Shown: piece by piece, positions 15,044-62,241 of the stretch
How the letters are laid out: each line of letters starts with the position of its first letter
How positions within the stretch are numbered: the first letter of the stretch is position 1
Assembly: GCF_052425735.1 (NCBI RefSeq)
Contig: NC_135771.1
Span: forward strand, 9,672,001 to 9,736,000
From: Oculina patagonica
Lineage: Eukaryota
Length of the DNA: 64,000 nucleotides
Direction of reading: 5' to 3'
Position numbers and translations under genes: made by a program
The notes under the pieces: generated by a model
Told to the model about the DNA's origin: nothing
The model's database searches: none
The model's input: the letters and a program-made list of their open reading frames with translations, nothing else

Positions 15044-15304
15044 TCAGTAATAGCAGGTTCTGCGATGTCCGTCAAAGGAACAAATCTGGCATTGGTATTT
15101 CACTCCATTGAAATCTGAGGGGCACCCGGTGTTACAGCACTCGCTAGAACTGCTGCATTCCGCTCCCTTCTCTTTGCAACCCCGGCGGGACAACACCCAC
15201 TTTCGGAACACGTCTGGTTCATAATAGCGATCGTCATCACGAGCCGACACCAGTGCAATCACACAAATGGTCAGCAGACACACCAAGAGCAAGGAGTACT
15301 TCAT
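15044..15304 (-). CDS. Secreted knottin-like peptide precursor, copy 2 (same protein as copy 1)
   Basis: Same protein, same acceptor context and same flanks as 6928-7188. Confidence 0.9.
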   Translation of the reverse strand: MKYSLLLVCLLTICVIALVSARDDDRYYEPDVFRKWVLSRRGCKEKGAECSSSSECCNTGCPSDFNGVKYQCQICSFDGHRRTCYY

Positions 15305-18300
15305 GTCTGTTAGACAAAAAAATTGACGTAAATTATTAATAATAAGGCCAGTTAATAAAAAACAATTTACCAACAGTTAGGATTATAATCGTACAAATCG
15401 AAGTGTCCACGTTGATATGTGCGATGTCGTGTGCTGGACTAGTGCGGTAAGTCCACGTGTGTACGCGCATTAAATCGAGGTCGATAACATGAAAACGAGG
15501 CATTTTGCTAACTCCAAAATTTCCCCTGGTATATGCTGGACACCAAGTATGTGCACAGGAAACCAAACGAAATAAGGAAAGCGTTCTCCTTCGTCGAACG
15601 TGATCAGTGTAACAGATAAATCAAATTAAACAACGCTTCACTTTGTCTATCAGTTTAATAATTATATTTGCAGCCGACAATCGGCGGGAATTTAGAAAAA
15701 AATCTTTTACGACTTCCCTTTTATTTTAACTCACCTGTGTTGCAGGACGTTTTCCGGTTTCTTCTGCAAAGGAAAGATTTGACACCACTAAGGCGAGGCG
15801 AGAATTTTGATGCTGGGTTTTACTGCTCAAATGACTCTCAAACTTTGTAGCGTCCTTACTTATACAACAAACCATAAAGCCAGGCAACGCATTGTGATTG
15901 GTTGTAATGGAAGCCTATTGAAATCGGCATTACTCAATACCGGCGGCGGCATCCTTTCAGGGATTAATAAAACCGCGTCGAAAGATCTTTATAAAACTCG
16001 ATGGTAGTTTCTTAACTCGATAATCAACCTAAAGACAACAAAAATGTATTGAACCTGCGAATGTCGCGAGCACCAATCACTGCGATTACCTGGCCAGGAA
16101 CTCCGTAGCTAGCGGGACGTGATTAGTTTACGATTACATCTTCAAAACACTTATAGACCGACGCGAAAATGAGGATTAACTGAATTAGGTACGGTCGTAA
16201 ATAAACTAATTAAAGTACTAGTGTTTTTACGACCCGCCTTGTCTGATCTTTGTGTCGCACCATGTAAAGGAATCGAAGAGAGTCTTGTATTGGACATTAC
16301 GGATTTCCCACCGTTTTTCGGGATTCCAACGACTGGATTCCTGATTCCATGTCTGTGGATTGGGGATTCTAAACTTTGCGAAATTCGGGATTCCAAAACT
16401 TTTTCGCTCTTTTCTTTTTATTGTTTATAAGTACTTCACGGGAGATGTGTTGGCCTAATAGAGATGTTTCGCATAAGCCCACTCCATACGCTAATGATCC
16501 GTTATTAGTGGATTTAGCAGAAATACCCAGGAGACAACCCTTTGCTTTGTTTTAAAGGACGGGAATAGAACTTTGTTGGGCAGATTGTTTAATTGTCGTT
16601 AAAAAAACAACCTTGCAGTTGAAAACTTATGGTGCCATCCTAGATGGTTTCGGCCAGCCAACTATCGCACAGAGGCACGCTGTACAAAAGTAACGTTGAG
16701 TGAACGTAAAAAAGCGTAAGATGCTTTGAACGTATTTTTCATTTAAAGTTAACCGTTATTCCAGTGGGAATATGACATAGAATCGGAAATAAAGATGATT
16801 TTATGTGAGGTAACATGAAACAATCACGGTTCGCAAGATTTTTTTATCAAAGACTGCGAGTCATGGCCCTGCCGTTAGTAGTTGTTGTTGTTGTTGCTTT
16901 TCTTTTTTGCCCGTGGCATTTCTGCGCAAAATAGAACGCTTTGATTGTAATTGACAAGAAAATGATTGTCTTGAACAAAAAACAAAGGCTTGTGTATGTT
17001 CCTTTGCAATCAAAACTGGTCTCCTGTGTAATTCTACTAAATCCACTAATAGTAGATGATTAGCATATGGAGTGGTCTTATGTGAAACATCTCTAATAAT
17101 CTTGTCATGAATGAATTCTTTGAACGCATTTTGAAATGAATGTATGACCAATACAGAGAATTTGTACCTTGCCTTTTGTTTAATAAGTTTGCTAGAACAA
17201 TGAATAAAGAAGCACCGTATTTTCAGGGATTAATAAAACTGCGTTGAAAGATCTTTATAAAACTCAATGGTAGTTTATAGTTAGTTTCTTGACTCAACAA
17301 TCAACTTAAAGGACAGGAAAAATGTATTGAACCTGCGAATGTTCCGAGCACCAATCACTGCGATTACCTGGCCAGGAACTCCGTAGCCAGTTTACGATGA
17401 CATCTTCAAATCACTTAAAGACCGACGCGAAAATGAGGATTAACTGAATAAGGTACGCCGTCGTAAATAAACTAATTGAAGTGTTTTTACGACCCGCCTT
17501 GTCTGATCTTTGTGTCGCACCATGTAAAGGAATCCAAGAGAGTCTTGTATTGGATAATACAGATTCCCCACCGTGGTTTCCGGATTTCAACGACTGGATT
17601 CCGGATTCCATGCCTGTGGATTGGGGATTCTAAACTTTGCGAAATTCGGGATTCCAAAACTTTTTCGCTCTTTTCTTTTTATTGTTTATTAGTATTTCAT
17701 GAGAGACGTGGAGGCCTAATAATCTTGTCATGAATGAATTCTTTGAACGAATTTTGAAAAGAACTGATGTATGACCAATACAGAGAATTAATGACTTGCC
17801 TTTTGTTTAATAAGTTTGCTAGAACAATGAATAAATCTTCTTGATTGTTCTTTCATTCACCCTAACGACAACCAATATCAGCGTTAGGGTCGAGCAATAT
17901 GTCTGCCCTGTGTGAACTTTGTGTGTCTTTTTCGCTTTAGTAGAAGAAAGAAGGAACAAAACATTATGCAGCCAATAAACACATCAAGCTTATTAGAGAT
18001 GTTTCGCTTTCGCATAAAGCCACTCCATATGGTAATGATCTACTATTAGTGCGTGGGTTTAGTAGAAATACAAAGGAGACCAGTTTTGATCACAGACCGA
18101 ACATGCAACAGCCTTTGTTCTTGCTCAAGACGATCATTTTCTTGTCGATCAAAATAAAAGCGTTCTATTTGCGTATGAATGAATGATATAGGTTCTTACT
18201 GACAGCGCATTTACAAAGCTCAATGCACTTCACAATTAGAATTATGGAATGAGACCGGACATCAGTATATCAGGCGCCTTTGGCAGCCGCTACCCGTCCA

Positions 18301-36242: not shown

Positions 36243-39200
36243 ATGGCCATAAAACACTCCTTTTACACGCCAGTTTTGCTTATCCTTTGTCAAATGATGT
36301 ATGAGGCAGCAGCTACTCAGCGGTGCAGCGTTACCGAAACTTCCATATATGGTATGATGCTACGGCGACACATCTTTAAGACGATCGCAGGCGCATCACG
36401 AGGTGATGTGTGCTTGCTGGAGTGTTATCGTGACATCAGGTGCCAAAGCTACAATTACGTCATTTCCAAACGCATGTGTGAGTTGAACGACCGTACCAAA
36501 GAAGCCAGACCTGAAGATTTCATTCCTGCCTCTCACAGATATTACTTTAGACGGGACAAGGATAGAGGTAGGTTAATTAGATATATAAAAATTATTTATG
36601 CGTTAATTTCGTATACCGGATAACCAAGGGCGCTCTCCAGGCGACCAAAAATCCCGGTTTGAAATACCGGGTATTCCATGTGGCGAATGGAACAGTATTT
36701 TCCGGTTGTTTGCACCAACAAAGCAAAACAAATGGCGGACTCGTTGCCTCTTTTATTTGCCATGCAGTTGTTCGACGACTCTGAAGCTAAAACGAACGAT
36801 ATTTTAAGGAAGGACGATGATATTTTTTCAGTGTAGCCTGCGAAGAAATTTAAATAGAGTTGGCGACTACTTTGCTTACGATACCAGCATATTTTCCTGA
36901 CGAGTCCAAGAGTACAGTCACTTTCGAAGGACGAGAGAAACATGCGCCTGTTTACTCGCCAGGCCATGCTAACAGGAAGGATACCACTTCGTATCGGATC
37001 TTGACGAGCAATCAATCATGCTCGAGTAAGAGCTGTAAGCTTTCGGTGACAAACAAACACGCCGAGCACTGTGTTGAGAAGCCATCTTGATGTGCGGGCA
37101 CGTTTAATTCCGGCTCGGAGAAGCTGGGCCCAAGCAGGAATAGTCGAATGGAACGGTATTTTCCGGTTGTTCCGATTTTCCGGAATTTTAAGACAACCTC
37201 GCGAGGTTGTGATATATTAGTTATATAAAACACAAGCCCAGTAAACTAACTGTACACAGCTAGATTAAAATTAGGTGGCATGTTCCTTTAATTTTCAGTC
37301 ATTCTTGGTTCCATTCCTGAGCTGCCCGCTGAATCATGTAAAGAAATCAAAGCAAGTGAAGGAGAAGAAGCGGCTAGCGGCAAATACTGGTTTGATTCTA
37401 TTATACCAGGGAGAACTGTACTTGCTCATTGTGACATGAACAAAAGAGGTAACTAAATTAATCATGGATGTTATTTTTATACTTAGCGTGAAATGAATAA
37501 TAAAATAAAGGGCTCTACATGGACCGATCGACATTAAAACAATCTAATCATTTCCTCATAAAAGCTCCGGAAATGTTGCCAGTTATTAATAAAGCTGCAA
37601 CACTGGATAATGTATTTCCAGAATTTTGATTGGCTAAGTGGCCGTCGGATATTTAACAATTATTCCACGAGCGCGCGTTGGATATGAGATGGTTGATAGC
37701 CAACGAGGCGCGCAGCCATTATTAACTTATAGCTGTTCATTATTTGTTCTTCCACAGCTGAGAATTGTGGTGAGCTGTACAAATTTGGTGAACGAGTCAA
37801 CGGTGTTTACACAATCGACCCAGATAGTAAAGGTGCCTTTGATGTGTTCTGTGACCAAACAACATCCGGAGGGGGATGGACTGTGTTGCAGAGGAGACTC
37901 GACGGCTCGGTTGATTTCTTCCGAGACTGGGCTGATTACAAAAGTGGCTTCGGTAATCTGACGGGCGAATTTTGGCTCGGGCTGGGAAAGATAAACAACC
38001 TGACCAGAAGTGGCAAACACAAGCTTCGTGTTGAACTGGAAGACACCGAAGGAAACGCTGCTTATGCCGAGTACGATGTGTTTGTGGTTGCGAATGAGGA
38101 GACTAACTATCGGCTGAGTGTAGGAAATTACTCAGGTGTGCATTTTTTTGTTACCTTATTACATGAAATTTTCGCGACACGTTAATTTCGCGATTTTGAG
38201 GTGCGCATATTTCGCGACACCTAAATTACGCGATTTGGCGAAAAGTTTGTATTTTGAATCACTTTAATTTCGCGTTTTTGAGTAAGACACAGTTTACAAT
38301 TCCTTGGCAATATTACTTTACATTCCATTGAATTTAAACGACTTCAAGGACGGGAACAACAGAGTAGTTCTCACAATGTCTACAAGTAGGTTATACTTGT
38401 ACGTACATAAGTTATTGTTCTTGAGTCAATTAACGACAACATCAAGAGAGGATGACAACATCCATTAAGATTAATAATTCCTTCCTTCAGTGGTACTAAA
38501 CTTATTCTATCTTGATTATTGACATAATGTGAGTCACTTAATTTTCGCGTCATGTTATGTTCGCGACACCTATTGTTCGCGTCACTTTAATTTCGCGATT
38601 TTTTTGGAATCGCGAAATTCGCGAAATTAACGTGTCGCGAAAATTTCATGTAATAAGGTACTACCTTTATGACTACTGAGTAGGATCCCAATTTCTCGAG
38701 CCTTGAAGGGGAACTAAACTTGGTTCGAGACATCGGGAATTCGAGAAATCGGGGAAAAAGTTCAGTGTTCGAAATGGAGAAGGAAACAAATTTTTGGTTC
38801 GAATTATCGGGATGTTCGAGAAATCGGGATTTCACTGTTTTTAGAGTTTCAGCGATGTTTTTCAGTTGCTTTGAAAAAGAATATTAACAATAATTCTACG
38901 AAATCGAGCGGAACATTTCTTAATATATAATCGACAAGAAAATAGGCCATACACGGCCCAGGTTTTTTTTTTTTGTACCGGGAAATTACTCAGGTAATCA
39001 TAATGCATTGATTAAAATAATATATATGAGACCAAACAAGAGAACAATTTGCGCGTGTCTCAAGCTGAAATTTACACCCCTAAGCGACCCGACGAGCATC
39101 CCCACCCATTTGATGGCACTGTAGTGTCTCTGGAACCTGAACCTGGACCGTTCATCCCGCCAGAGTAGTCCAGCGCACTAACCATAGCTTTTTGTTCTAC

Positions 39201-39485
39201 TGTACATGTACTTCAGGAAACGCAGGCGATTCGCTGACTAACCATGATGGCTACCCATTCACAACAAAAGACCAGGACAACGACCAATCTTTCAATCACA
39301 ACTGTGCTGTCATTCAAAAAGGAGCTTGGTGGTACAAAAAATGTCACACAGCCAACCTGAATGGTTTCTATCATCTGGGGAATTACTCAGGCGGTTGGGC
39401 GGATGGTGTTGTCTGGAAAACGTGGAAAGGAATTTGGTATTCTGCAAAAACAACTGAGATGAAGATCAGACCGTTGGATTTTTAG
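36243..39485 (+). CDS. Secreted PAN/apple + fibrinogen C-terminal domain (FReD; ficolin/MFAP4-like) protein, 4 coding exons, ~373 aa
   Basis: Exons 36243-36567, 37299-37448, 37758-38135 and 39217-39485 have GT-AG phase-1 junctions and sum to 1122 nt. Signal-like N-terminus, PAN-type CLLEC..CQSYN..CELN, and FBG motifs [46 protein letters not shown]. Confidence 0.92.
38152..38660. mobile_element. Intronic MITE with ~40-bp TIRs
   Basis: TACCTTATTACATGAAATTTTCGCGACACGTTAATTTCGCGA with its reverse complement ending at 38660. Confidence 0.88.
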
Positions 39486-45922: not shown

Positions 45923-46933
45923 GGTCAAATAAACTGTTCTAATCATCTGAGCAATTCATCGTGGAATTTTAACAATACCATTTCCAACAAGTCAGTAATG
46001 CATGCGGAGTCTTCGTTACCGCAGACACACATATCTGTGTTTATATGCTTGGGATTGCTTGGTGCTGCAATCGTGTTTGCAAACTCCGTTGTCATTTTCC
46101 TGTACAGAAGAAAGGAATTTTTGAAAACAAAAACAAACCTTTGTCTAGCCTGTTTGGCAGTGTCGGATATGCTAGCAGGGGCTATTGCCGTTCCCATGGT
46201 AATATCGTGCAATTTGGCAGAGGTAGATATCGCTATAACAATATGTACCGCTATGGACTTGTCTTCAAGATTTATATCCATATCAACCGTGCTGCACCTG
46301 CTTTTGGTAACTATGGAGAGATATTTTATGATAATTCATGCCATGCATTATCCGTACATCGTTACAAGACTTCGGCTGAAAACTGTGCTTGTGTTTATCT
46401 GGTGTTTCTCGCTGGGAACCTCGCTCATTCAGCTCGTCTGGATTCCTGTGGATGGCCCTAGCACAGCTGACGTCCTCGAAAAAGACACAATATACAGCTT
46501 GACGGTGTTTTTTGGAATTGTTGTGCCAAGCTTACTTCTTATGGGTGCTGCTTTATCTTCTATATTCCGAGTTCTTAGAAGGCAAATCCAGAATATAAAG
46601 AGAGGAAACAGTTACAAAACGAGGGCTTACCAAAGCAGACGGATACCTTTAGAGGGCAAGGCAGTGATTGTGTTTGGCTCAATGATATTAACTTTTATAG
46701 CCTGCTGGTTTTCATATTTTCTTGACGGGCTGATGCAGGATTTGGACCTTAAAGCCCCTTATCTACCGGACTGGGCCCGTGTTGTGCTCATGTTTTTCCG
46801 ATTTGGCTCGTCGGTATTGAATCCGATACTTTACACTTTCTTCAAGGAGGATTTTAAAAGAGCTGCACTGGTGTCGTTTGTAGGGTCACGAAGATCGTCT
46901 CGTTTCACCACTTACGATGTATCACCAGTCTGA
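45923..46933 (+). CDS. Class A (rhodopsin-like) GPCR, aminergic/adenosine-receptor-like orphan; main coding exon
   Basis: Seven hydrophobic segments with LAVSD (TM2), ERY (TM3), TM4 Trp, CWFSY (TM6) and NPILY (TM7). The frame is open from the acceptor TTTTCTAG| at 45923, 25 codons before the ATG at 45998. Confidence 0.93.
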   Translation, partial: GQINCSNHLSNSSWNFNNTISNKSVMHAESSLPQTHISVFICLGLLGAAIVFANSVVIFLYRRKEFLKTKTNLCLACLAVSDMLAGAIAVPMVISCNLAEVDIAITICTAMDLSSRFISISTVLHLLLVTMERYFMIIHAMHYPYIVTRLRLKTVLVFIWCFSLGTSLIQLVWIPVDGPSTADVLEKDTIYSLTVFFGIVVPSLLLMGAALSSIFRVLRRQIQNIKRGNSYKTRAYQSRRIPLEGKAVIVFGSMILTFIACWFSYFLDGLMQDLDLKAPYLPDWARVVLMFFRFGSSVLNPILYTFFKEDFKRAALVSFVGSRRSSRFTTYDVSPV

Positions 46934-48089: not shown

Positions 48090-50165
48090 CATGTACAACC
48101 TAGTCAAAGCATTAAAAAAATTGCGACTACTCATGCAGCTCGTTTAGTTTATTTCTACTCTGAGTAGCTTATATTTCCTATTTTAATAGATTAATTAATT
48201 TTTATGCTGTAAAATATTCTATCATTTTTTTTTCTGTAAAATAAAATGGTTCCTATTGTTGTTGATTTCTTACAAGGTCTACAGCTCCCTACCACCTCCC
48301 CCACAGACCTGTACTGTCGTTTGGACAATAATAATAATGTTTCGATTGCAAAACGACACAGAATCTAATGCAAATTTCTCGTAATACATGCGGGCATCGT
48401 AATCTGTTACTTTAGGGTCTTTTAAGTGTTTTGTGATGCACTTCTTCTTTCCTGGACGTGTGCCTTTGCCGTGATAGAATGCCAAAGATAGAAGGGTCCA
48501 AAGCATTGCAAACTTTACCCGTATCACATTTAAAAGAAAGCTACACGTGTTGCTTTCTGCACGTGTCAACAGGGTCTTTAACGGGTCTTTTTTTTTTTCC
48601 TTGATCGTTTTGCGGGTTCATCTAACATAAGTCAACATAATGATGGATGAAATGTTTGTACGTTCACTTAGCTGGGGCTTTTAAAACACTATAAAACACC
48701 TTTTCAATATCACTGAAATCATTTCATCCTGGAGGTTTTTTCGGTGTTGTCAAGACTTATACATAGCCTGAAGAAGAAACCGAATTTGACAGACACGACA
48801 AAGATAATGACGCCGCATGCATTATACAATCAAAGATTGCCAAAACTGATTATAATCAGAAGGATGTGCAGTTTTACTTAATGTCATTATTTCATGCGCG
48901 TTTATTTTATGGTAATTTCTTTACTCTCCTGCGTGTGCATCAGGTTAACCACCATTCTGTTTTTAGAGAGTGGATACTCAAGTGTTTATTCACATTGATT
49001 CACATGCTTGACCACGTGCTGGGGAACACGTGACTGAGATGCCGAGAAAATAACGGCATAGCCGTCACGAGAAAACGCTCTTATTTTCATCATTTGAACT
49101 TGTCGAATTATTTATCGCTGCAAAATGGACGATTATGAGCCGAGAAGAGAAGGAGATAGATAATCTACGCCTGAACGTAGATGCACAACGACAAACTGAA
49201 CATCAATCACAATATATATTATTGAATATTGTTTGGTAAGAAACATATTTTATAGCTAAAGCTGGCTCTATTTTGGACATTATTCTACTGAGGAAGGGAT
49301 AAGCTCGAAACGTTTAGAATGAGCCTAAATATTTTGGCACTTTTTATTTAACTTTTGTTTTGCTTTTAACTACTAAGTCTTCATTTTTCAGTTCAAACTG
49401 CGGATATCTATTTTAGATAGCCGTTTGACGGCGCAAGATTACGATCCTAGGTGACATGTTCTTGGCATCAGTATTTGAGGTAGTTCAATTAATACATGAC
49501 AAATCGAACTAGATCAAAACGTTTAAGGATTTTACAGTGGCTAGAAAGAAAATCGGCAATTTACCCAAATCTAACTGAGCTCAACTGCGTTTTTCAGTGC
49601 AGGCAGCTATTTAGCCACGCATTTGCTAGCCCCGTATGTATACAATAATATAAGCAATGCAATTTTTAGAAAAGCAGCGTACTGTTCTGTAGGTGTGTTG
49701 CTCATATTGTAACTCTAATTGTTATGTGAAGTTGATTATGTAATTATAAGTGCGTCAAACCCTGTAATTGTTATGTTATTCCAAAAAATGTGTACAAGTT
49801 GTTAAGCAGATTTCGCCATAATTAATAAAAGTTTTATTCACTTGGGAACTCTTTACATATGTTGCAGGTACAACTACGCGTACATTTTCATAATCACTGC
49901 TTTCAAAATCTTAATCCAAGAATATATGAGGACATTTCTAAGTCTTATCTCTTCCAAAATCACTCGTCTGTGTTTGATCACTCCAGCAAACAGTTAGTAT
50001 TGGTTTTCTTTGACCAATACGATTGATACAGCCACAACAACTTGAGATAAAGTGAAATTTAAAACAATTCAAGTAAACCCAAAACTAAGAGTTCTCATTT
50101 ACTGAGATTCCTTTGCTAATGTTTCTATTGGTTAATCTACTTTGGGTTTTTATCACGGGGACGTC

Positions 50166-50903
50166 TTAGCGACACCCACATTCCTCAACAATCATCTCCT
50201 TAAAAGTGTGCATCACGAACATTCCACGGCGTGCAAGGTAATAAGTGAAAGACATCGGCCGCAGTTTGGTCGGGACACAGCATGCCTCGCCATCCGTTTT
50301 ATTGCCGTTTCTCTCCTTTAAGACGGCCATAAGCAAAGAGTGCGGAGTGACGAACTTGTTCTTCTGTGATAGGGAGCACTGGCCTTTGCACTGATAGGCG
50401 TTGAAACTCTCAGGGCCGATGACCTTGGTGGACAAGCTAAGATCTGCTGTGTGGACGATCATGTCCATCTTTCGGCAGGCATCAACTTCGTCTTCGGTCT
50501 TTGCTGGAAGAACGTCAGCGCGGCCATAGGAAGCTAAATAAAATGAGGAAGAGAACGGATGATCATTAACTTTGTGAACTTCTGATTGCCTTAATTATTT
50601 ATTAAATGGCTCCTGACAGAGCCTTGGGAACTAACAAAGATGGATGACAGAGAAAATTGATTCTATTCCTTTTTGTAAATTCATGTAAAACGTGGTTGCA
50701 CGATCTACAGATGCGATGTAAGGCACGCCCATTAAAACTCCTAAAGAAAATTCCTTTCGCATAGGAACTTTTCACGCATTGCATCAACAACAAAGAAAAC
50801 GGGCTCTTTCTAGTTCTTTATTCTCACCTTTTCGGATCACAGATGTACTCGCCAAGTACAACTGCGAGGCGAAAATCAAGAAAACCAGCTGCGGCATCGT
50901 CAT
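50166..50903 (-). CDS. TGF-beta/BMP superfamily ligand, 2 exons, ~147 aa, apparently without a prodomain
   Basis: Exon 1 50903-50828 (MTMPQLVFLIFASQLYLASTSVIRK, donor AAG|GTGAG) and exon 2 50533-50166 (acceptor TTTTATTTAG|) join in frame (444 nt). Seven-Cys knot: CRK..CKGQC..CCVPTKL..MIVEECGCR. Confidence 0.88.
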
Positions 50904-51603
50904 GGTGTTAACGGCAAGCTTTTGATAGCGTCAAGTTGATCCTTCGAATGCCTCCACGAAAGTGACCCAAAGATGGTTGCGGCTGTCACTATATACTAAG
51001 CACGCCTCCGCGTGTTGCCTAAACCAATAGCACTCACACATTTGATGTTTGTGTTATTCTAGAAGCTTTATAATTTTGAATAGAAAAGGAAGCTCTATCA
51101 CTGCGTTAACGATACTTCCATAATTTCTTAATAATGTGTATGGCTTTGAAGAAGGCCTTGACCCCAAAAGGGAGTATTGTTATTAAAACAAGTTAAATCT
51201 TCTAAAACTGTTTACCTTATAGTGAAAAGTGTGGAATGTCAATATACTGTATATTGACAAAAACGTGTTTATTTATAGTGTTTGTTATGTTTTCAGAAAT
51301 AATGAGGTGAATCGAAAAATGTGTGTCGGTCAGTTCTTGATGAATAGTGCAATGTCGTCAGTGTAATATTTTCCACTAACCACACTGCTACAGTAAACAA
51401 TCTTCGTGCCCCGCGGACTTGTAACTTTGTCTTGTTTGTTTCCGGCTCGATCAAAAAAGATAAACAGGAGTGGTTGATTGGAACTTTCAAGCTTTATCAA
51501 AAGAGAGTCGACTGGAGCCGAGGTTTAAGAGTTACACGACACTTCTTTTATACCCTTTCATTCCATCGACTATTAGTCAACGAGCTACGCGAAAGTCAAT
51601 TGA

Positions 51604-52120
51604 CATTGTTCATATTATCTGAGTACAAATTCTCGTGGACTGGGTTCAAGGTCTGAAAAGTTCTGCGTGCACTTCCGCGGAAATCGATCGAGCCTTTCAT
51701 AATAGTAAACAAAATAATCCCAGCAATGTGTAAACAGATTTTGTAGTGTCTTCGTACTTCCTAAATTTAATAACAATATCATGACATCTACGGGTTGCGG
51801 GAACTGCATGGTCTTTTATCGCGGGTTTTAAAACATCTGTACTTCCTACAGACTGAGGCAATTTCCATTGTTGTCCATTGTTCATATTATCTGTGTACAA
51901 ATTCTCGTGGACTGGGTTCAATGTCTGAAAAGTTCTGCGTGCACTTCCGCGGTAATCGAGCCATGCATTCAAAATAGTTAACAAAATAATCCCAGCAATG
52001 TGCAAACAGATTTTATAGTGTTTTCGTACTTCCTAAATTTAATAACAATATCATGACGTCTCCGGGTTGCTGGAATTGCATGGTCTTTTATCGCGGGTTT
52101 TAAAACATTTGTACTTCCTA
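51604..52120. repeat. Two-copy tandem repeat, period ~272 bp
   Basis: CATTGTTCATATTATCTG starts at 51604 and 51876, and the copies are colinear. Confidence 0.9.
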
Positions 52121-52796
52121 CAGGGCCGAAGCCAGAACAAAATCATGACTGAGGCAATTTCCATTGTTAAATTGTCTATCTAGATAGTGACTCTGCCCCT
52201 TCAAAAGAAAATAACAAAAAACGGAAAAAACGATTGAGGCAAGTGACTCGGTTTGCCTCAAAGCGGCTACGGCCCTGCCCTAGACAGAAAAAAAAAAACA
52301 ATATATGGAAATAACTTTTCATTTTGCATGTTAATCCCTCAAAAAAGCTGTATGAAGCTTAGGATTTCTTTCACGAAGTTGAAAGTGCGTAGACGATATA
52401 GTAACTTCGCGTTGGCCTATGCAAGAGTGTTTTACTTATCAAAATAACCCTCGCCGAAATTGTTATCGGGGGATGCATAGTTAACGTACGTTCCTGTTTC
52501 CCTTAGACAAGAGAATGCTGGCACGGTTAAGTAAACAACTTTTCTCTTTTCGAAAGAATGTAAATAACTGATTAAACGGAAATTTTTACTGATCAGATAA
52601 AGGCTGGTTGTTTCTGGGCATAAGTACAACCATAAGCATTAGGACATAAGAAGAAAGCACACTCACTCAGTCATAATTTGTTTTCCTGGTTTATAGGGTG
52701 AAATTTAAATTTTATCCAATCTTATGTTGTTTTCCCCTGGTGATATTCGAATAGCTAAACGTGCATGTGCTTTGATGCTCAGCATTTATATATTCG

Positions 52797-54115
52797 CACG
52801 TGTAAGGGTCATCACGTGTAATAATCAGTTATTTTTAAGCTGGTGTCAAGTGGCCATAAGCACAAGTATTATCGCATAAAAACGCACGTTTTGTCGGTCT
52901 TAAATTACTTTGCTGGTTTTGGGATCTAAATTCGAATTGTTTTCCACTGTACGTTGATATGACAAAGACTTGAACTCCGTTCCACACGTGTCAATAGCTA
53001 CACGTGTCAATATTGTTTAAAACTGCTCACTTTTCCCACACGTGCCAAGATCTTCACGTGCGATAATCAATTATTCTAAAGCTGGTCGCACAACTTTTTT
53101 ATGTTTCAGGCATATAAAATTATTTCATTTAATCTTGTGATTATTTCACAAGATTAAGCATATTAAAGGGTAGGGATATCGGTCATTTAGGTATTTAAAA
53201 GGGCCTACAATTAAAATATTTCAAACAGACGCACCTTATGACTGTATCATTTAAATTTATTAAACGCTACATAAAAATGGCATCAAGACTTCCTGTTTTA
53301 GGCATATGTCATGTCTTTTCGGTGTATGAAATTGGTACCTTTTAGCTTTTTTCAAGAAAAGGTACACGGAAGGGGTGCATTTTCTGTCAAAATGGTACAT
53401 AAAAGGGTAAATAAATACAAGAGGTTGGACCTCGGGGCAAAGCCTCCCATTAGAAAAGCTTTTTGAGCCGTCCCCCGGAAGCGGGCGACCCTCGTTGCCG
53501 GCGCTTCGCACCGTTTGCGTGTTTCAGGAAGCCTGCTCGCAGGCTACTAGGAATTGGCTTAAGCATAAGCCCAAGGAGAACGAACAATGCTGTATTCTTG
53601 AGCGCGCTGATGTTAGACATGTATTTCTTGTGGACGGCATAAAAAAACTGTGTTCGTTCTTCTTATTCGCTTATGCAATTCTTGTGTTTGTACTTGCAAT
53701 CATTGGTCATTTTCAGTTGTTAGTAGACGTAAATCAATCAGTTTCATAGTTTCCCCCTCTTTATTTTGATAGGAAAAAGCGCCGTTATAAACACGTGTTT
53801 AGTAATGACTACACGTGACGATGCTAATTAATAATTATTTATCCGCGCACGTGTCAGGGTCTTCACATGTAAAAAATTCTCAATAATCTCCCTAACACTC
53901 CACGATTTGATGCTGGTTTATGGGGCATAATTTGACACGTAACTTCAAATATCTTTGTCCTTAAGGCCCGGTTTAACTTTTATTTGTGTACACTTGTTTT
54001 TCCCTTGTTGGAATAAGAATAGGATAGAAACACCGTTCAACACATGTTAATAGATAACTACACGTGCTGATGTTGTTCACTCTCAGTTATCCACATGTGC
54101 CAGCTTCTTCACGTG
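52797..54115. promoter_or_regulatory. Cluster of paired E-boxes (11 CACGTG + 3 CACATG) in a degenerate ~250-bp repeat upstream of the TGF-beta-like gene
   Basis: CACGTG at 52797, 52813, 52985, 53001, 53039, 53055, 53792, 53812, 53848, 54061 and 54110. CACATG at 53864, 54041 and 54092. Confidence 0.5.
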
Positions 54116-54339
54116 CAGTAATCTGTCTAACTGTGTAACATTACACGATTTGTTACTGGTTTATACGACCTTTTTACCAGGCCGTTACCAGACCTTTGCC
54201 ATAGACGAGGCAAGATCTTGCTAGTAAGTTCTGGAGCATACCCTACAGAAAATTTTGAAATCTAGAAGCTACGAATCTCTTTCAGAAACATTTTTCATGA
54301 GGCCGTAATCCGGACCCCCCCCCCCCCCCCCCCCAAATC

Positions 54340-54383
<44 letters not shown>

Positions 54384-55408
54384 TTTCCCCCCCCCCCCCC
54401 CCCCCTACGGTATTTCTTGAGAAAAATCAATCTTGTTCGACTGGGGATTATTTTCCCAACAAAACATATTTTGTTTCGGTTTTGGGTAAAAATTTAGACG
54501 AGGCAAGTGGCTCGTCTTGCCTCTTGCTAGTTACGGCCCTGTTTTATGGTGATTATTCTTCCAGCTATTTTCGTAATAGAACAGCTTTTCCCATAGAGTG
54601 TAGTCAAATTATTTTGTCTAAAGGGCTTCTGGGGAGCACCAAACCAAGTCCCGGGTATTCAGTTTTGACTTGACAGCCTTCTTCCTTCTAGAAAAGCCGC
54701 AAAGTATTGGGTTTATTTGTTTTCAAAGGTAGAGATAAAAAAAATGTTTGTTTCCGCCAAAAGCGCGTGCATTGAATTGATTAGGTCAGTGCAACATTGA
54801 GTTACAGGAAGAATTCATTTCCAGTTTGGTAAACTGTAGTCCTTTTAATCTTTGAAAAATTCACAATTCTACACTACGGTGGAATAAGAACAATAAAACA
54901 GTTCAAAAAATTGCTATTATTACCCTTATCCGACCCGGCTTAATTGGAGGGTCGTAATGGGGTGGGAGGGGGGGGGGGGGATTGCTTTGACGGTTAAATT
55001 TTTACCGATTTTGACGGTTGACGGTTATTAAAAGAAAATTTCTTTCATGATTTCAAATTCATCATAAATTTTGTGTTTTGTTATATTAACCTTTGTGTTA
55101 AGGATTTTGTTTTTGTTCGTTCAGTAATGAAACCAAGTGACATTTTAACATTCTTCTCCAAGAATTCATATAACTATCTTTATCAATGCAGTTAATTATT
55201 AATTAATTAATGAATAATGAATATTAACATTTTGACACCGGAAATACTTTCAGATTAAAGCATGAAAACTGATTTACCAGTTAAAATAATTCTCTGAAAG
55301 CCAAAAGTTTGAAGTGAATAGCTAAAATCATGAGATTTGAAAGTTTGAAACGTTTTAGGTAAAAATTTTTTTGGGTTGGTATTTTTTTTTTTTTTGGTGG
55401 GGGGGACT

Positions 55409-55670
55409 TTGGGCGACTTAAGGCGACTTTTAGGCGATTTTAGCTTATTTTGCCAAAATTACGGGCGATTTGGGCGATTTAACGCGATTTTGGGCGACTT
55501 TGGGCGATTTTGAGCGACTTTAGGCAATTTTGGTTATAAAATTGCCTAAAGGTGACCGACCTAAGTACAGTTGTGGTATACATGTACATGGGAATTATCA
55601 TGGTACACCATAAAGAAATATCTATACTAGCGACTTTGGGCGACTTTAGGCGATTTGGGGCGATTTTGGG
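55409..55670. repeat. Short GGCGA(C/T)TT repeat array, probably transposon subterminal repeats
   Basis: More than ten copies of (G)GCGA(C/T)TT at 10-12 bp spacing. Confidence 0.65.
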
Positions 55671-58957: not shown

Positions 58958-59343
58958 ATAAGTGTAGCGAACGATTTGTTGGGGGAGAAAGTTTCTCTCT
59001 CCTCCGAGGGGTCTTTTGGGGGGGGGATGGGGGGGGGGGGGGGGAAAGGGGGGGGAAAAAGGGGGGACCCCCCCCTTTTTTCCCCCCCCCGGCGGGGGGA
59101 GGGAACAGTTTTTAGAAAAAACTTTCAGGTAATCTCAGTCCGTTCCAAATAGGCTATCATCTTCCGATCTGCCATCACTACGATCATTTAGTTCAGTGCA
59201 GTTTCCTAGCAGTGGTAAAGAAACGCAATAACTATAAATGTTCTCGATATCGTTAGGAGGACTTTTTCAAATGTACTACAAACATCAAAGGACTAATTTA
59301 ACTTTGATTTTATTCTCTTCTTATTCTGACAGAAGTGCTTGAC

Positions 59344-62241
59344 ATGAACAACATAGATGAAATTACACAAGCCATCTCTATCGGCCTCATTGTTGCCAAT
59401 TTCCTTATCAACACCCGTCGAGTCCTAAAAGCCATCGAGTTATGCAAAGAATGTTTGTTCATTTTCGACAACACACAACTCGTAAAAGAAGAGAAGAAAT
59501 ATAAATTGCTTTGCAAGCATATCTATTCAACGGTGTTACTGGCGTACTGGTTTATTAATGATTTGACAAATGCAATAAAATACGGTAAAAAACTTCTCTA
59601 CATTCTTCAAAAATGCAGACAAGGGAAGGAAGAATGTCAAATAAACATAACACTAGCGACATTGTATCACTGCCAAAGTAAGTACGCAGAAGCAAAAGAA
59701 CACAGCGAGAAAGCACTGTTAATCAGTACAGAAATTGGTCACAAAAAGGGGAAGCTTCCTGTTACGGAAACCTTGGAGCGGTGTATCAGTCAGTTGGAGA
59801 ATACGAGAAAGCAAAAGATTATTGCTTGAAAGCACTTGCCATCAGAAGAGAAATTGGTGATAGAAATGGAGAAGCCTCCTGTTACGGAAAACTCGGAGCG
59901 GTTTTTCGATCTGTTGGCGAATATGAGAAGGCAAGAGACTATCACATGAGAGCACTAACGATAAGAAAGGAAATGGTGGACAGAAACGGAGAAGCCTGCT
60001 GCTATGGTGACCTTGGAATTGTGTTTCAATCTTTTGGTGAATATGATAAGGCTAACGAATATCATCAGAAAGCACTTACGATCAATAATGAAACTGGTAA
60101 CAGAAAAGGAGCGGCTTGCTGTTATGGAAACCTCGGAATCCGTACTTAAATCACTTGGAGAGTATGAGAAGGCGAAAGAGTATCTTGAAGAAGCACTTGC
60201 AATCAAAAAAGAAATCGGCGACAGAGAAGGAGAATCCTCCTGTTACAGAAACCTTGGAAACGTGTTTCAAGCTGTTGGTGAGTATGTCAAAGCCAAAAAA
60301 TATTACGAAAAAGAACTTGCGATCACAAAGGAAATTGGTGACAGAAAAGGTGAGGGAGCTGTTTATGGAAACCTTGGGGCTGTGTTTATCTCTCTTGGTA
60401 CATATGCAAAGGCTAACGAATATCTTCAGAAAGCACTTGCTCTCATTAAAGAGGTTGGTGACAGAAAAGGTGAAGCCGGTGTCTACGGAAACCTTGGAAT
60501 TATGTTTCAGTCAATTGGTGACTACAAGCAAGCTAGAGAATATCTAGAGAAGGCACTTACGATCAGTAAAGAAATTGGCGACAAAAACGGAGAAGCCTCA
60601 ATTTATGGAAATCTTGGAGGTCTTTTTGAATTGCTTGGTGAATACATCGAGGCGGAAGAATCTCATAAAAGGGCGCTGGCAAAAGGTGAAGAGATTGGAG
60701 ACGTTAAGAAACAATCTGGATCACTTTGCAGTCTTGGATGGATTATGCTAAAAACAGGAAAGTTTCAGGAAGCTTTGTCGTTTCTCCTTCCAAGTATTCA
60801 GAAATGCGAGGACTTACGATGACTTACGATGTTTTCTTCGAGACAACGATCAATTTAAGATAACTTTTTCCCACGAACATGGTTCTCCTTACTGGGTACT
60901 TACTGCATTCTTCTGTCATGAGGGAAATCCTAATCAAGCTTTGGTCGTTTCAGAGCTTCTTCGGGCCAGAGCTCTGGCAGAATTAATGTCAGCTCAGTAC
61001 TCCGTTGAGAATCAAATCGCAGATATTCCTCAGTCCTGGGTTGGCATTGAAAGTGAAATGGACAAAAAACTTAGTTGTTCTTGCCTATACTTCTTTTACA
61101 CTGATTGCGTTGTATTTTCGTGGATTCTAAAGGCTGGAAAAGTCGAGCATTTCCAGAATGTGAATGGAAAAGGAAAGATTGTTCACGAAGGATTGGTCGA
61201 AAATTTGGACGAGTTTTTTGCTAGCGAACGCTTCAGACGTTTTTGCATTTTACCAGACGAACATTCCGAAGACCGATCTTTAAACGATATTGAACAGAAA
61301 ACTTACGAGGAAGACATCCGTAAAGCGTCGGGAATTGTAAATGATGGTAAAGATAATCAAGGTAACGCCAATTGGAAACTTTCCCTGTGTCATAAATTGC
61401 TCATCGCTCCTGTGAAAGAATTACTTGAGGACCCTGAAATCATCATAGTCGCTGAACGGTCTTTATACAACATTCCATTTGCCGCGTTACCTGATGAAAG
61501 TGGAAAATACTTATCAGAGACTTTCAGAATCCGCGTCCTTCCTTCCTTGACGACTCTCAAGCTTATTCAGGACAGCCCAGCAGATTATCACAGTCAGACT
61601 GGTGCACTGATAGTGGGAAATCCTGATGTTGGTAGGGTGTGCTACAAGGAACGTCTTAAATACATATCGCGACTACCTTGTGCAGAAAGTGAAGCAAATT
61701 AAACATGATAGGAGAAAAGCTTGGTGTCAAGCCGTTTCTGGGACGGCAAGCAACTAAGCAAGCAGTACTTCATGTTATAAATTCAGTAAGTCTGATACAT
61801 TTCGCTGCACACGGTGATGCAGAAAGAGGAGAAATCGTACTTGCCCCTCTTCGTACTCTCAACAGGATCCCAAAAGAAGAAGATTACTTATTGACAATGT
61901 CTGATATTTCAAAAGTTCAACTGCGTGCTAAACTGGTAGTACTAAGCTGTTGTCACAGTGGACGTGGACAGATTAGAGCCGAGGGAGTTGTTGGAATCGC
62001 TCGAGCATTCCTAGGATCTGGTGCATGCTCAGTGTTAGTGGCACTGTGGGCTCTAGAAGACAGTGCGACAGAGCGGTTCATGAGTCGTTTCTACGAGCAC
62101 CTTGTTGGTGGGGATAGCGCCAGTGAATCTCTTCACGAGACCATGAAGTGGATGAGATGTAACGGCTATTCTGACGTGAGACATTGGGCACCTTTTATGC
62201 TGATTGGTGATAACGTGACATTTGATTTTGGAAAATCATAG
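59344..62241 (+). pseudogene. TPR-CHAT (TTC28-like) gene with four frame-disrupting lesions
   Basis: 40-aa TPR repeats (YGNLG..F.S.GEY.KA.EY.EKAL.I.KEIGD) followed by a CHAT domain (LIHFAAHG, LVVLSCCHSG, WAPFMLIG). Breaks occur at ~59750, ~60140, 60812-60831 (GACTTACGAT duplicated) and ~61700. Confidence 0.88.

Follow-up and report, generated by a model that had tools for sequence, protein, structure and literature searches.

Large prodomains are regarded in the textbooks as a requirement of TGF-beta/BMP ligands, which need them for folding, dimerising, transport and latency. The locus described here, on the minus strand of a 64-kb stretch of Oculina patagonica DNA (hereafter the window, to which positions given without a contig refer), raises the question of whether a gene of this superfamily can do without that part altogether. 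An earlier note, made from the letters of the window, had read the locus as a signal-peptide exon spliced to a seven-cysteine exon with essentially no prodomain, and had suggested a latency-free ligand or, otherwise, a decoy, antagonist or heterodimer partner. It is asked here whether such a gene is real, where it came from and what its product might do.

Gene structure and transcript

The coding sequence opens with an ATG at 50903-50901 on the minus strand, and the coding part of exon 1 is MTMPQLVFLIFASQLYLASTSVIRK plus one base (features in Table 1). The donor AAAAG/GTGAGA (GT at 50827-50826) was rated good, and with the acceptor TTTAG/CT exon 2 begins at 50533, in frame. Assembled contigs of four public runs (X1, X2, X3, and X10), which may omit rare isoforms, were aligned to 49600-55599. 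The joint 50533/50828, which the earlier note had named as the junction to look for, was present in contigs of three runs from two studies, X1 and X2 of organism A and X3 of organism B, with a shorter flank of 125-149 nt, and the in-frame union of the two exons across a 294-bp intron was thereby confirmed. Judged from their differences, the three runs belong to close relatives (98.5% and 95% identical) rather than to the labelled source species (organism C), and their RNA status is a guess from the run search. A single X1 contig of 864 nt represents the whole mRNA (50976-50828 joined to 50533-49820) without unaligned 5' sequence. The intron and the region 51000-52000 were uncovered in X1, X2, and X3; both were covered in X10, which covers the region evenly throughout and was therefore taken to be a DNA run. 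The transcript contigs begin about 15-40 nt downstream of the TATATA at 50995-50990, and their 3' ends fall 13 nt beyond the AATAAA. The NCBI prediction for Oculina patagonica has the same 147 amino acids (KAL9950912.1 / XP_078354604.1, ACROYT_G043484) under the name 'hypothetical protein'. ACROYT_G043484 is a real, transcribed gene of two exons.

Table 1. Features of the ligand gene ACROYT_G043484, in window positions
Feature	Positions	Strand	Basis
Core promoter TATA box AGTATATAGT	50988-50997	-	Present also in the orthologue L038 and in paralogues; putative promoter role
5' UTR, 73 nt, without upstream ATG	50976-50904	-	Contig starts at 50976, 50963, and 50952
Exon 1 coding part, 25 codons + 1 nt (76 nt, phase 1)	50903-50828	-	Signal-exon homology with paralogues and L038
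Predicted signal peptide, residues 1-21	50903-50841	-	Family alignment; cleavage predicted after STS or AST (-3/-1 rule)
Intron, 294 nt, GT..AG	50827-50534	-	Junction in X1, X2, and X3 contigs; intron read through in DNA run X10
Exon 2 coding part including stop (50168-50166), residues 26-147	50533-50166	-	Reading frame and Pfam
TGF_beta cystine-knot domain, Cys45-Arg147	50477-50169	-	Pfam 84 bits; AF2 model; Foldseek
Finger-1 LSLSTKVIGP (residues 57-66) in place of LGWxxWIIAP, both Trp lost	50441-50412	-	Sequence and BMP10 alignment
Cys110-Cys111; Cys110 is the interchain cysteine	50282-50277	-	Sequence; Cys110-Cys110 at the dyad of the dimer model
3' UTR with AATAAA at 49833-49838	50165-49820	-	Contigs end at 49820 or 49821

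Protein features and predicted fold

The product of 147 aa begins with the signal-like MTMPQLVFLIFASQLYLASTS, which together with VIRK makes up the product of exon 1, and continues with VIRKASYGRADVLPAKTEDEVDA as far as Cys45, the first cysteine of the knot. Its N-terminus has a hydrophobic core (L6-A18) and small residues at -3/-1 (STS/V), and shows homology to the N-terminus of every member of the family described below. Only about 23 residues separate the signal from Cys1. Exon 2 matched the Pfam family TGF_beta (PF00019) over profile positions 2-104 of 104 with 84 bits (cut-off 27; E 1.3e-23), which is far above chance. The seven cysteines (45, 74, 78, 110, 111, 144, and 146) follow the pattern CxGxC...CC...CxC and the chain terminates in CGCR-stop, i.e., the 7-Cys and not the 9-Cys arrangement, as in the BMP/GDF class. 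The best solved relatives by sequence were BMP10 (about 60 bits) and BMP7 and BMP9 at 55-60, with activin A nearly equal (54 bits). By its domain the product is a member of the TGF-beta superfamily and, judged from its cysteine pattern, of the BMP-like 7-Cys type. Tryptophan and the R..R motif are absent from the whole 147-aa product. The short distance from signal to Cys1, the missing RXXR site, the LSLSTKVIGP segment and the retained CC pair, all noticed in the earlier note, were upheld when the sequence was read again.

An AlphaFold2 model based on a 77-sequence alignment had the two-finger fold, with pLDDT values of 87-96 in the fingers and 55-67 in the wrist helix, and with a disordered N-terminus. 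Its Foldseek matches, whose target TM-scores were 0.6-0.72, included BMP6, GDF5, activin A, BMP2, BMP7, and BMP9. When two copies of residues 38-147 were modelled together, the score was 0.64 against 0.00 for the best control; of the proteins solved as pairs, 21 of 30 attained that mark (17 of 29 for eukaryotes), and of those solved as single chains 0 of 23. The three runs agreed in at least 88% of contacts, with a partner pLDDT of at least 79, and the modelled interface was canonical, the wrist helix (88-100) of each chain lying on the fingers of the other and Cys110 meeting Cys110 at the dyad. Since many such dimers have been solved, the pass may reflect likeness to, or memory of, these structures rather than proof of dimerisation.

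Search for a prodomain and a convertase site

When the N-terminal parts (prodomains or linkers) of 18 relatives were compared with the 64-kb window by tblastn, the signal exon alone was matched, and upstream prodomain exons were rejected on this result. No match to TGFb_propeptide (PF00688) was obtained in the 147-aa product at E <= 10, and the mRNA contigs of X1, X2, and X3 contained no further upstream exons. The RXXR convertase site is absent from the 147 aa, at a place where the homologous part of the paralogues P0169 and L031 reads RTKR. Because the mRNA has two exons, the window holds no prodomain coding and the product has no convertase site, folding or latency by means of a prodomain in cis is excluded for the 147-aa product. 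Splicing of exon 2 to distant prodomain exons, which the earlier note had given as the finding that would overturn its reading, was seen neither in the contigs nor in the window. The structural half of that reading (two exons, no prodomain coding in the window, no convertase site) has thus held, and the functional half is retained here as a set of candidate options.

The gene shares with the canonical BMP2/4, BMP5-8, GDF5, and BMP9/10 the 7-Cys knot, the interchain cysteine, the CCVPTK segment, the CGC end, the fold, and the modelled dimer geometry. However, the canonical BMP/GDF ligands have a prodomain of 200-300 aa, an RXXR site and the tryptophans, and the coral gene lacks all three, i.e., the prodomain, the RXXR site and the finger-1 tryptophan pair. 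The coral has ordinary ligands as well: when its own BMP5-8, BMP2/4, and GDF5-like genes are compared with the human ones, they reach 198, 191, and 155 bits, whereas the best match of the studied gene among solved structures (BMP10) is at about 60.

A stony-coral family of short precursors

In the 529-Mb genome of Oculina patagonica 55 TGF_beta domain matches were found; other cnidarians have about ten TGF-beta ligands. Eleven of the 55, including the studied gene, belong to one family, with family-HMM scores of 138-174 against at most 91 for all others, and the studied gene (166) falls inside the range of the other ten copies. Six copies are located at 54.07-54.12 Mb of C4 and four on the unplaced contig C1187, and the studied gene stands alone on C14. 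The relatives found in databases are likewise short, with precursors of 160-220 aa, and come from stony corals, namely Oculina, Desmophyllum, Stylophora, Orbicella, and many other assemblies; several of them are on transcript-sized contigs. They include XP_078355688.1 'BMP7-like' (186 aa) and ACROYT_G016724/27/28/30 (163-203 aa) of O. patagonica, KAJ7380990.1 of Desmophyllum pertusum (217 aa), a 'GDF1-like' protein of Orbicella faveolata (176 aa) and XP_022792321.1 'nodal homolog' of Stylophora pistillata (211 aa). A full-text literature search on coral TGF-beta expansions, prodomain-less ligands and the coral 'nodal homolog' returned no paper on this family, and a BMP review covering Cnidaria makes no mention of the short precursors.

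Behind the family signal consensus MTMLYLFLSLFASQLFLVTPSVI come an acidic linker rich in Ser, Thr, and Pro (EEQVENREEP..NKT..SES..) and, after it, the mature domain. The annotated genomic paralogues have two exons, with exon 1 encoding signal and linker in 37, 70, 77, or 83 aa, compared with 25 aa in the studied gene, and with exon 2 beginning about 19-25 aa ahead of Cys1. The studied gene has the homologous signal exon, a phase-1 acceptor about 19 aa before Cys1 and the mature-domain motifs of the family; promoter, signal exon, and acceptor are homologous to those of the coral relatives, the two-exon plan is the same, the mature domains are 45-69% identical, and NAYQCKGKCS, ACCVPTKLRP, MIVEECGC, and the loss of the finger-1 tryptophan pair are held in common. 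On the other hand, the coral relatives keep an acidic linker of 15-90 aa, of which the studied gene has none, and in the closest of them an R/K-T-K-R site, also missing here, is preserved 13 aa ahead of Cys1. The gene is therefore not the one-off that the earlier note had taken it to be; it belongs to a family of short precursors in stony corals, within which its reduction has gone furthest. The same applies to the lost tryptophans, which are real but not peculiar to this gene: the pair is absent from nearly all members (consensus DLGLSxxIIAP), P0011 alone keeping both (LGWKNWIIYP), and the loss thus belongs to the family as a whole.

In the tree the studied gene was placed within the short family (support 92), and the family formed a 39-row clade (support 96) with the prodomain-bearing sisters P0013 and P0018, while P0015 fell within the family's 14-row subclade on a long branch. 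These three, the nearest proteins outside the family, still have the arm of a TGFb_propeptide domain, with matches (E 3e-6 to 4e-5) at or just under the Pfam cut-off, as well as RXXR sites. The tree was built on 107 columns and its deep forks are weak; the naming of an ancestral subfamily was dropped at that resolution. The family formed its own clade and the coral BMP2/4, BMP5-8, and GDF5-like genes fell elsewhere, so that this tree gives no orthology of the studied gene to Nodal, BMP7, or GDF1, after which its relatives have been named by automatic annotation.

Traces of an older prodomain may persist in the linkers. The motif PPYLLKIY in the linker of P0002 resembles the prodomain motif PxYMxxLY, present in 31 of 71 long relatives, and hhalign of the linker against the long relatives meets at this motif, although weakly (E 0.0012, probability 20%). 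No short family member has a PF00688 match in Pfam. The likeness is suggestive of a decayed remnant of the PxYMxxLY straitjacket in the long linkers. Given the prodomain-bearing sisters and this decayed motif, the family looks like a set of ligands that have lost the prodomain arm and keep a shrinking N-terminal remnant. Some copies retain the RTKR site, and P0167 (163 aa, exon 1 of 37 aa) has an intermediate form. A series is visible in one genome, from the full prodomain of the sisters through an arm-less linker with RTKR and a 15-aa remnant to nothing in the studied gene, which stands at its end.

A second tandem expansion, comprising about 15 TGF-beta genes whose last exons are short, was observed at C4:43441038-43862649 (L006, L010-L012, L014-L016, L018-L020, L027, and L029) and C13:27046661-27087433 (L007 and L028). 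Its finger 1 reads IYGEEDNWIIAP or IYGDGNFVVAP. This arm-less BMP2/4-like tandem family (C4 43.44-43.86 Mb) is similar to the family of the studied gene in its reduced prodomain, short last exons and partial loss of the tryptophan pair, but differs in clade, with family-HMM scores of 47-87 against 138-174. In the tree several of its copies are on the side of BMP2/4 (L002) in a weak group (support 78), and five form a separate clade. In about 8 of 15 copies an RXXR-type site (e.g., RTSRR) stands immediately ahead of Cys1, and as most copies thus retain it, a cleaved pro-piece is to be expected there. TGF_beta fragments with internal stops lie beside intact members at C1187:452792-453090 and C4:43488962-43491452, so the tandem clusters include decayed copies. 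For coral biology, this means two large lineage-specific expansions of TGF-beta ligands in Oculina patagonica.

Possible route of linker and RTKR loss

In a DNA alignment with four paralogues the promoter, the 5' UTR, the signal exon, and the acceptor were homologous. Where the paralogues read ...GAA CAA GTT GAG AAC AGA... (EQVENR), the studied gene has AAA G/GT GAG AAT AAA, a consensus donor, and the frame past this donor closes after 13 codons. The acceptor is thus common to all, and the donor is shifted to directly after the signal peptide. At the start of exon 2 the paralogues have DPDAHA-ERTKR-NIQPKKPE and the studied gene ASYGRA-DVLPAKTE, a deletion of 15 nt (five codons) at the place of ERTKR.

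These differences point, with good support, to an ancestor with a 'mini-prodomain', made up of an acidic linker in which the PxYMxxLY motif had decayed and of an RTKR-type site behind it. A new donor right behind the signal peptide (GTT GAG AAC to G/GT GAG AAT) would have removed the linker from the mRNA, and the five codons with the RTKR site would have been deleted as well. The first 15 nt or so of the intron resemble the start of the linker codons of the paralogues, and tblastn of residues 1-32 of the relatives reaches 50814. Beyond about five codons past the donor, comparison of the intron with exon 1 and intron of the paralogues by blastn gave nothing significant (E > 0.3), and the intron as a whole was not supported as a decayed linker. 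The linker may have been either intronised or deleted.

Conservation and selection

An orthologue, L038, was found on a Tara metagenome scaffold from another coral. It is colinear with 51093-50034 at 73% identity (blastn), and 85% identical in the stretch from promoter to exon 2. L038 shares the TATA box, the signal exon, the donor, the acceptor and the five-codon deletion, has an intron of 259 nt and no pair of basic residues before Cys1 (..VIGKAPNSSAEVLPANTEGEDDAC); the promoter, the splice sites and the poly(A) signal are conserved. The two proteins are identical in 97 of 146 residues and all seven cysteines are kept. With dS about 0.46-0.52, dN/dS was 0.45 over the entire CDS and 0.37 within its mature part. 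Decayed orthologues, which together with missing expression the earlier note had counted among the outcomes that would speak against it, are not what this search found, the frame of L038 being intact. The ratio amounts to purifying selection, much weaker than would be expected of a patterning BMP.

For organism B, 13 of about 27 differences were listed; nine codon changes among them were non-synonymous and one was synonymous, a partial ratio which is not significant alone. Three of the nine non-synonymous changes (T61I, V63F, and G65R) fall in the former tryptophan segment. For organisms A and B together, 12 non-synonymous and 2 synonymous changes were among the differences listed. The picture suggested by these comparisons is that of a maintained, fast-evolving secreted protein.

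Possible mode of action

Based on these results, the product is probably a secreted, disulfide-linked, convertase-independent and non-latent BMP-like ligand or modulator. Signal peptidase alone, cutting after Ser21 or nearby, would release a chain of about 126 aa which, with about 23 residues before Cys1, would have the size of an ordinary mature BMP. This chain would fold without a prodomain and form a Cys110-linked dimer, secreted already mature; as there is no pro-piece to remove or to impose latency, the dimer would leave the cell competent. It would then act on TGF-beta/BMP receptors by way of its type I (wrist) surface, which is remodelled. Remodelling of knuckle and wrist is common to the whole family, and at the receptors the product may serve as agonist, as competitor or as partner in a heterodimer. 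Coral-specific signalling seems more likely than axis patterning, because of the restriction to stony corals, the tandem amplification and the fast evolution. The fuller proposal, that a stony-coral BMP-like mature domain folds, dimerises, and is secreted without a prodomain, and signals or blocks through a re-designed type I surface in a coral-specific role, for instance in immunity, symbiosis control, or skeleton growth, is put forward tentatively, as a conjecture that could well fail.

Prodomains are generally held to be necessary for the folding and secretion of TGF-beta ligands, and this counts against the predicted secretion. Ligands with little pro-region do exist: GDNF-family ligands and the GSDF of fish have precursors of roughly 150-215 aa, in which a pro-piece is still cleaved. 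The GSDF cluster was the second-nearest to the studied gene by language-model features (0.90), although it is not close kin, and no GDNF-family chain (GDNF, neurturin, artemin, or persephin) was among the 41 solved-structure matches at E <= 1e-5. If the proposed reading is true, the gene would be a natural exception to the rule of the prodomain as chaperone of TGF-beta ligands, and the natural minimal form of a prodomain-less BMP-like ligand. In any case it is a transcribed, conserved natural gene for a predicted ligand with no prodomain. If the product is secreted and active, it would show that a mature domain is able to work on its own, and would provide a small BMP scaffold that needs no convertase.

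The product could also be secreted and not signal, either as a receptor trap or antagonist that binds the type II receptor and, with its remodelled wrist, fails to recruit type I, or as an obligate heterodimer partner of canonical BMPs or of other members of its family. We regard this as rather unlikely, though it has several points in its favor. Both finger-1 tryptophans are gone, the changes between close species (T61I, V63F, and G65R) cluster in that segment, the interchain cysteine is retained, and ten paralogues with compatible dimer surfaces occur in the same genome. However, the tryptophans are missing from nearly the whole family, so that their loss is no special inactivation of the studied copy. 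AMH also lacks the finger-1 tryptophans and still signals, which counts against a trap. For the rest, the data do not separate a trap or partner from a directly signalling ligand.

It is quite improbable that the locus is a transcribed but drifting copy which became functionless with the loss of its pro-region and whose open frame survives by recency or chance. The non-synonymous excess in organisms A and B could be taken in this sense, as could the position of the gene as a dispersed single copy apart from the family clusters and the stops in a sister paralogue fragment elsewhere. On the other hand, L038 has kept the architecture, an intact frame and the seven cysteines at a dS of about 0.5 and under the constraint given above, it has also retained the promoter, the splice sites and the poly(A) signal, and the mRNA was assembled in several runs of two organisms. 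Finally, although about 8.4 kb of unannotated DNA extends from exon 1 to the next gene and contigs drop rare isoforms, a prodomain encoded by distant upstream exons of an unassembled isoform is scarcely credible and largely refuted, as three independent contigs stop at 50952-50976, just past the conserved TATA box and without unaligned 5' sequence, as the tblastn search of the window reached the signal exon only, and as exon 1 opens, like that of every paralogue, with a start codon and a signal peptide of its own.

Neighbouring features of the window

At 52794-54123, i.e., 1.9-3.2 kb upstream of the ligand gene, five copies of a 33-nt unit were found, with two CACGTG boxes 16 nt apart. The units are interleaved with segments of high depth in the DNA run (53000-53600 and 54000-54600; about 3,000-37,000 against a baseline of 20); these segments are repeats of high copy number, and a long poly-C tract (54307-54413) belongs to them. 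The next gene upstream, on the opposite strand (59335-62241, +), has long ORFs in which TPR repeats precede a CHAT-like C-terminal part. The neighbours of the ligand gene on its downstream side are an intronless ORF of 311 aa resembling a seven-helix receptor (45998-46933, +) and exons of a fibrinogen-related domain protein (37844-39485, +). Three near-identical copies of a 109-aa ORF lie in tandem, 8-10 kb apart, on the minus strand (6928-7257, 15044-15373, and 25369-25698), each starting like a signal peptide and ending in a small part rich in Cys (..CKEKGAECSSSSECCNTGCPSDFNGVKYQCQIC..); by sequence this trio looks like a recently triplicated gene for a secreted knottin-like peptide.
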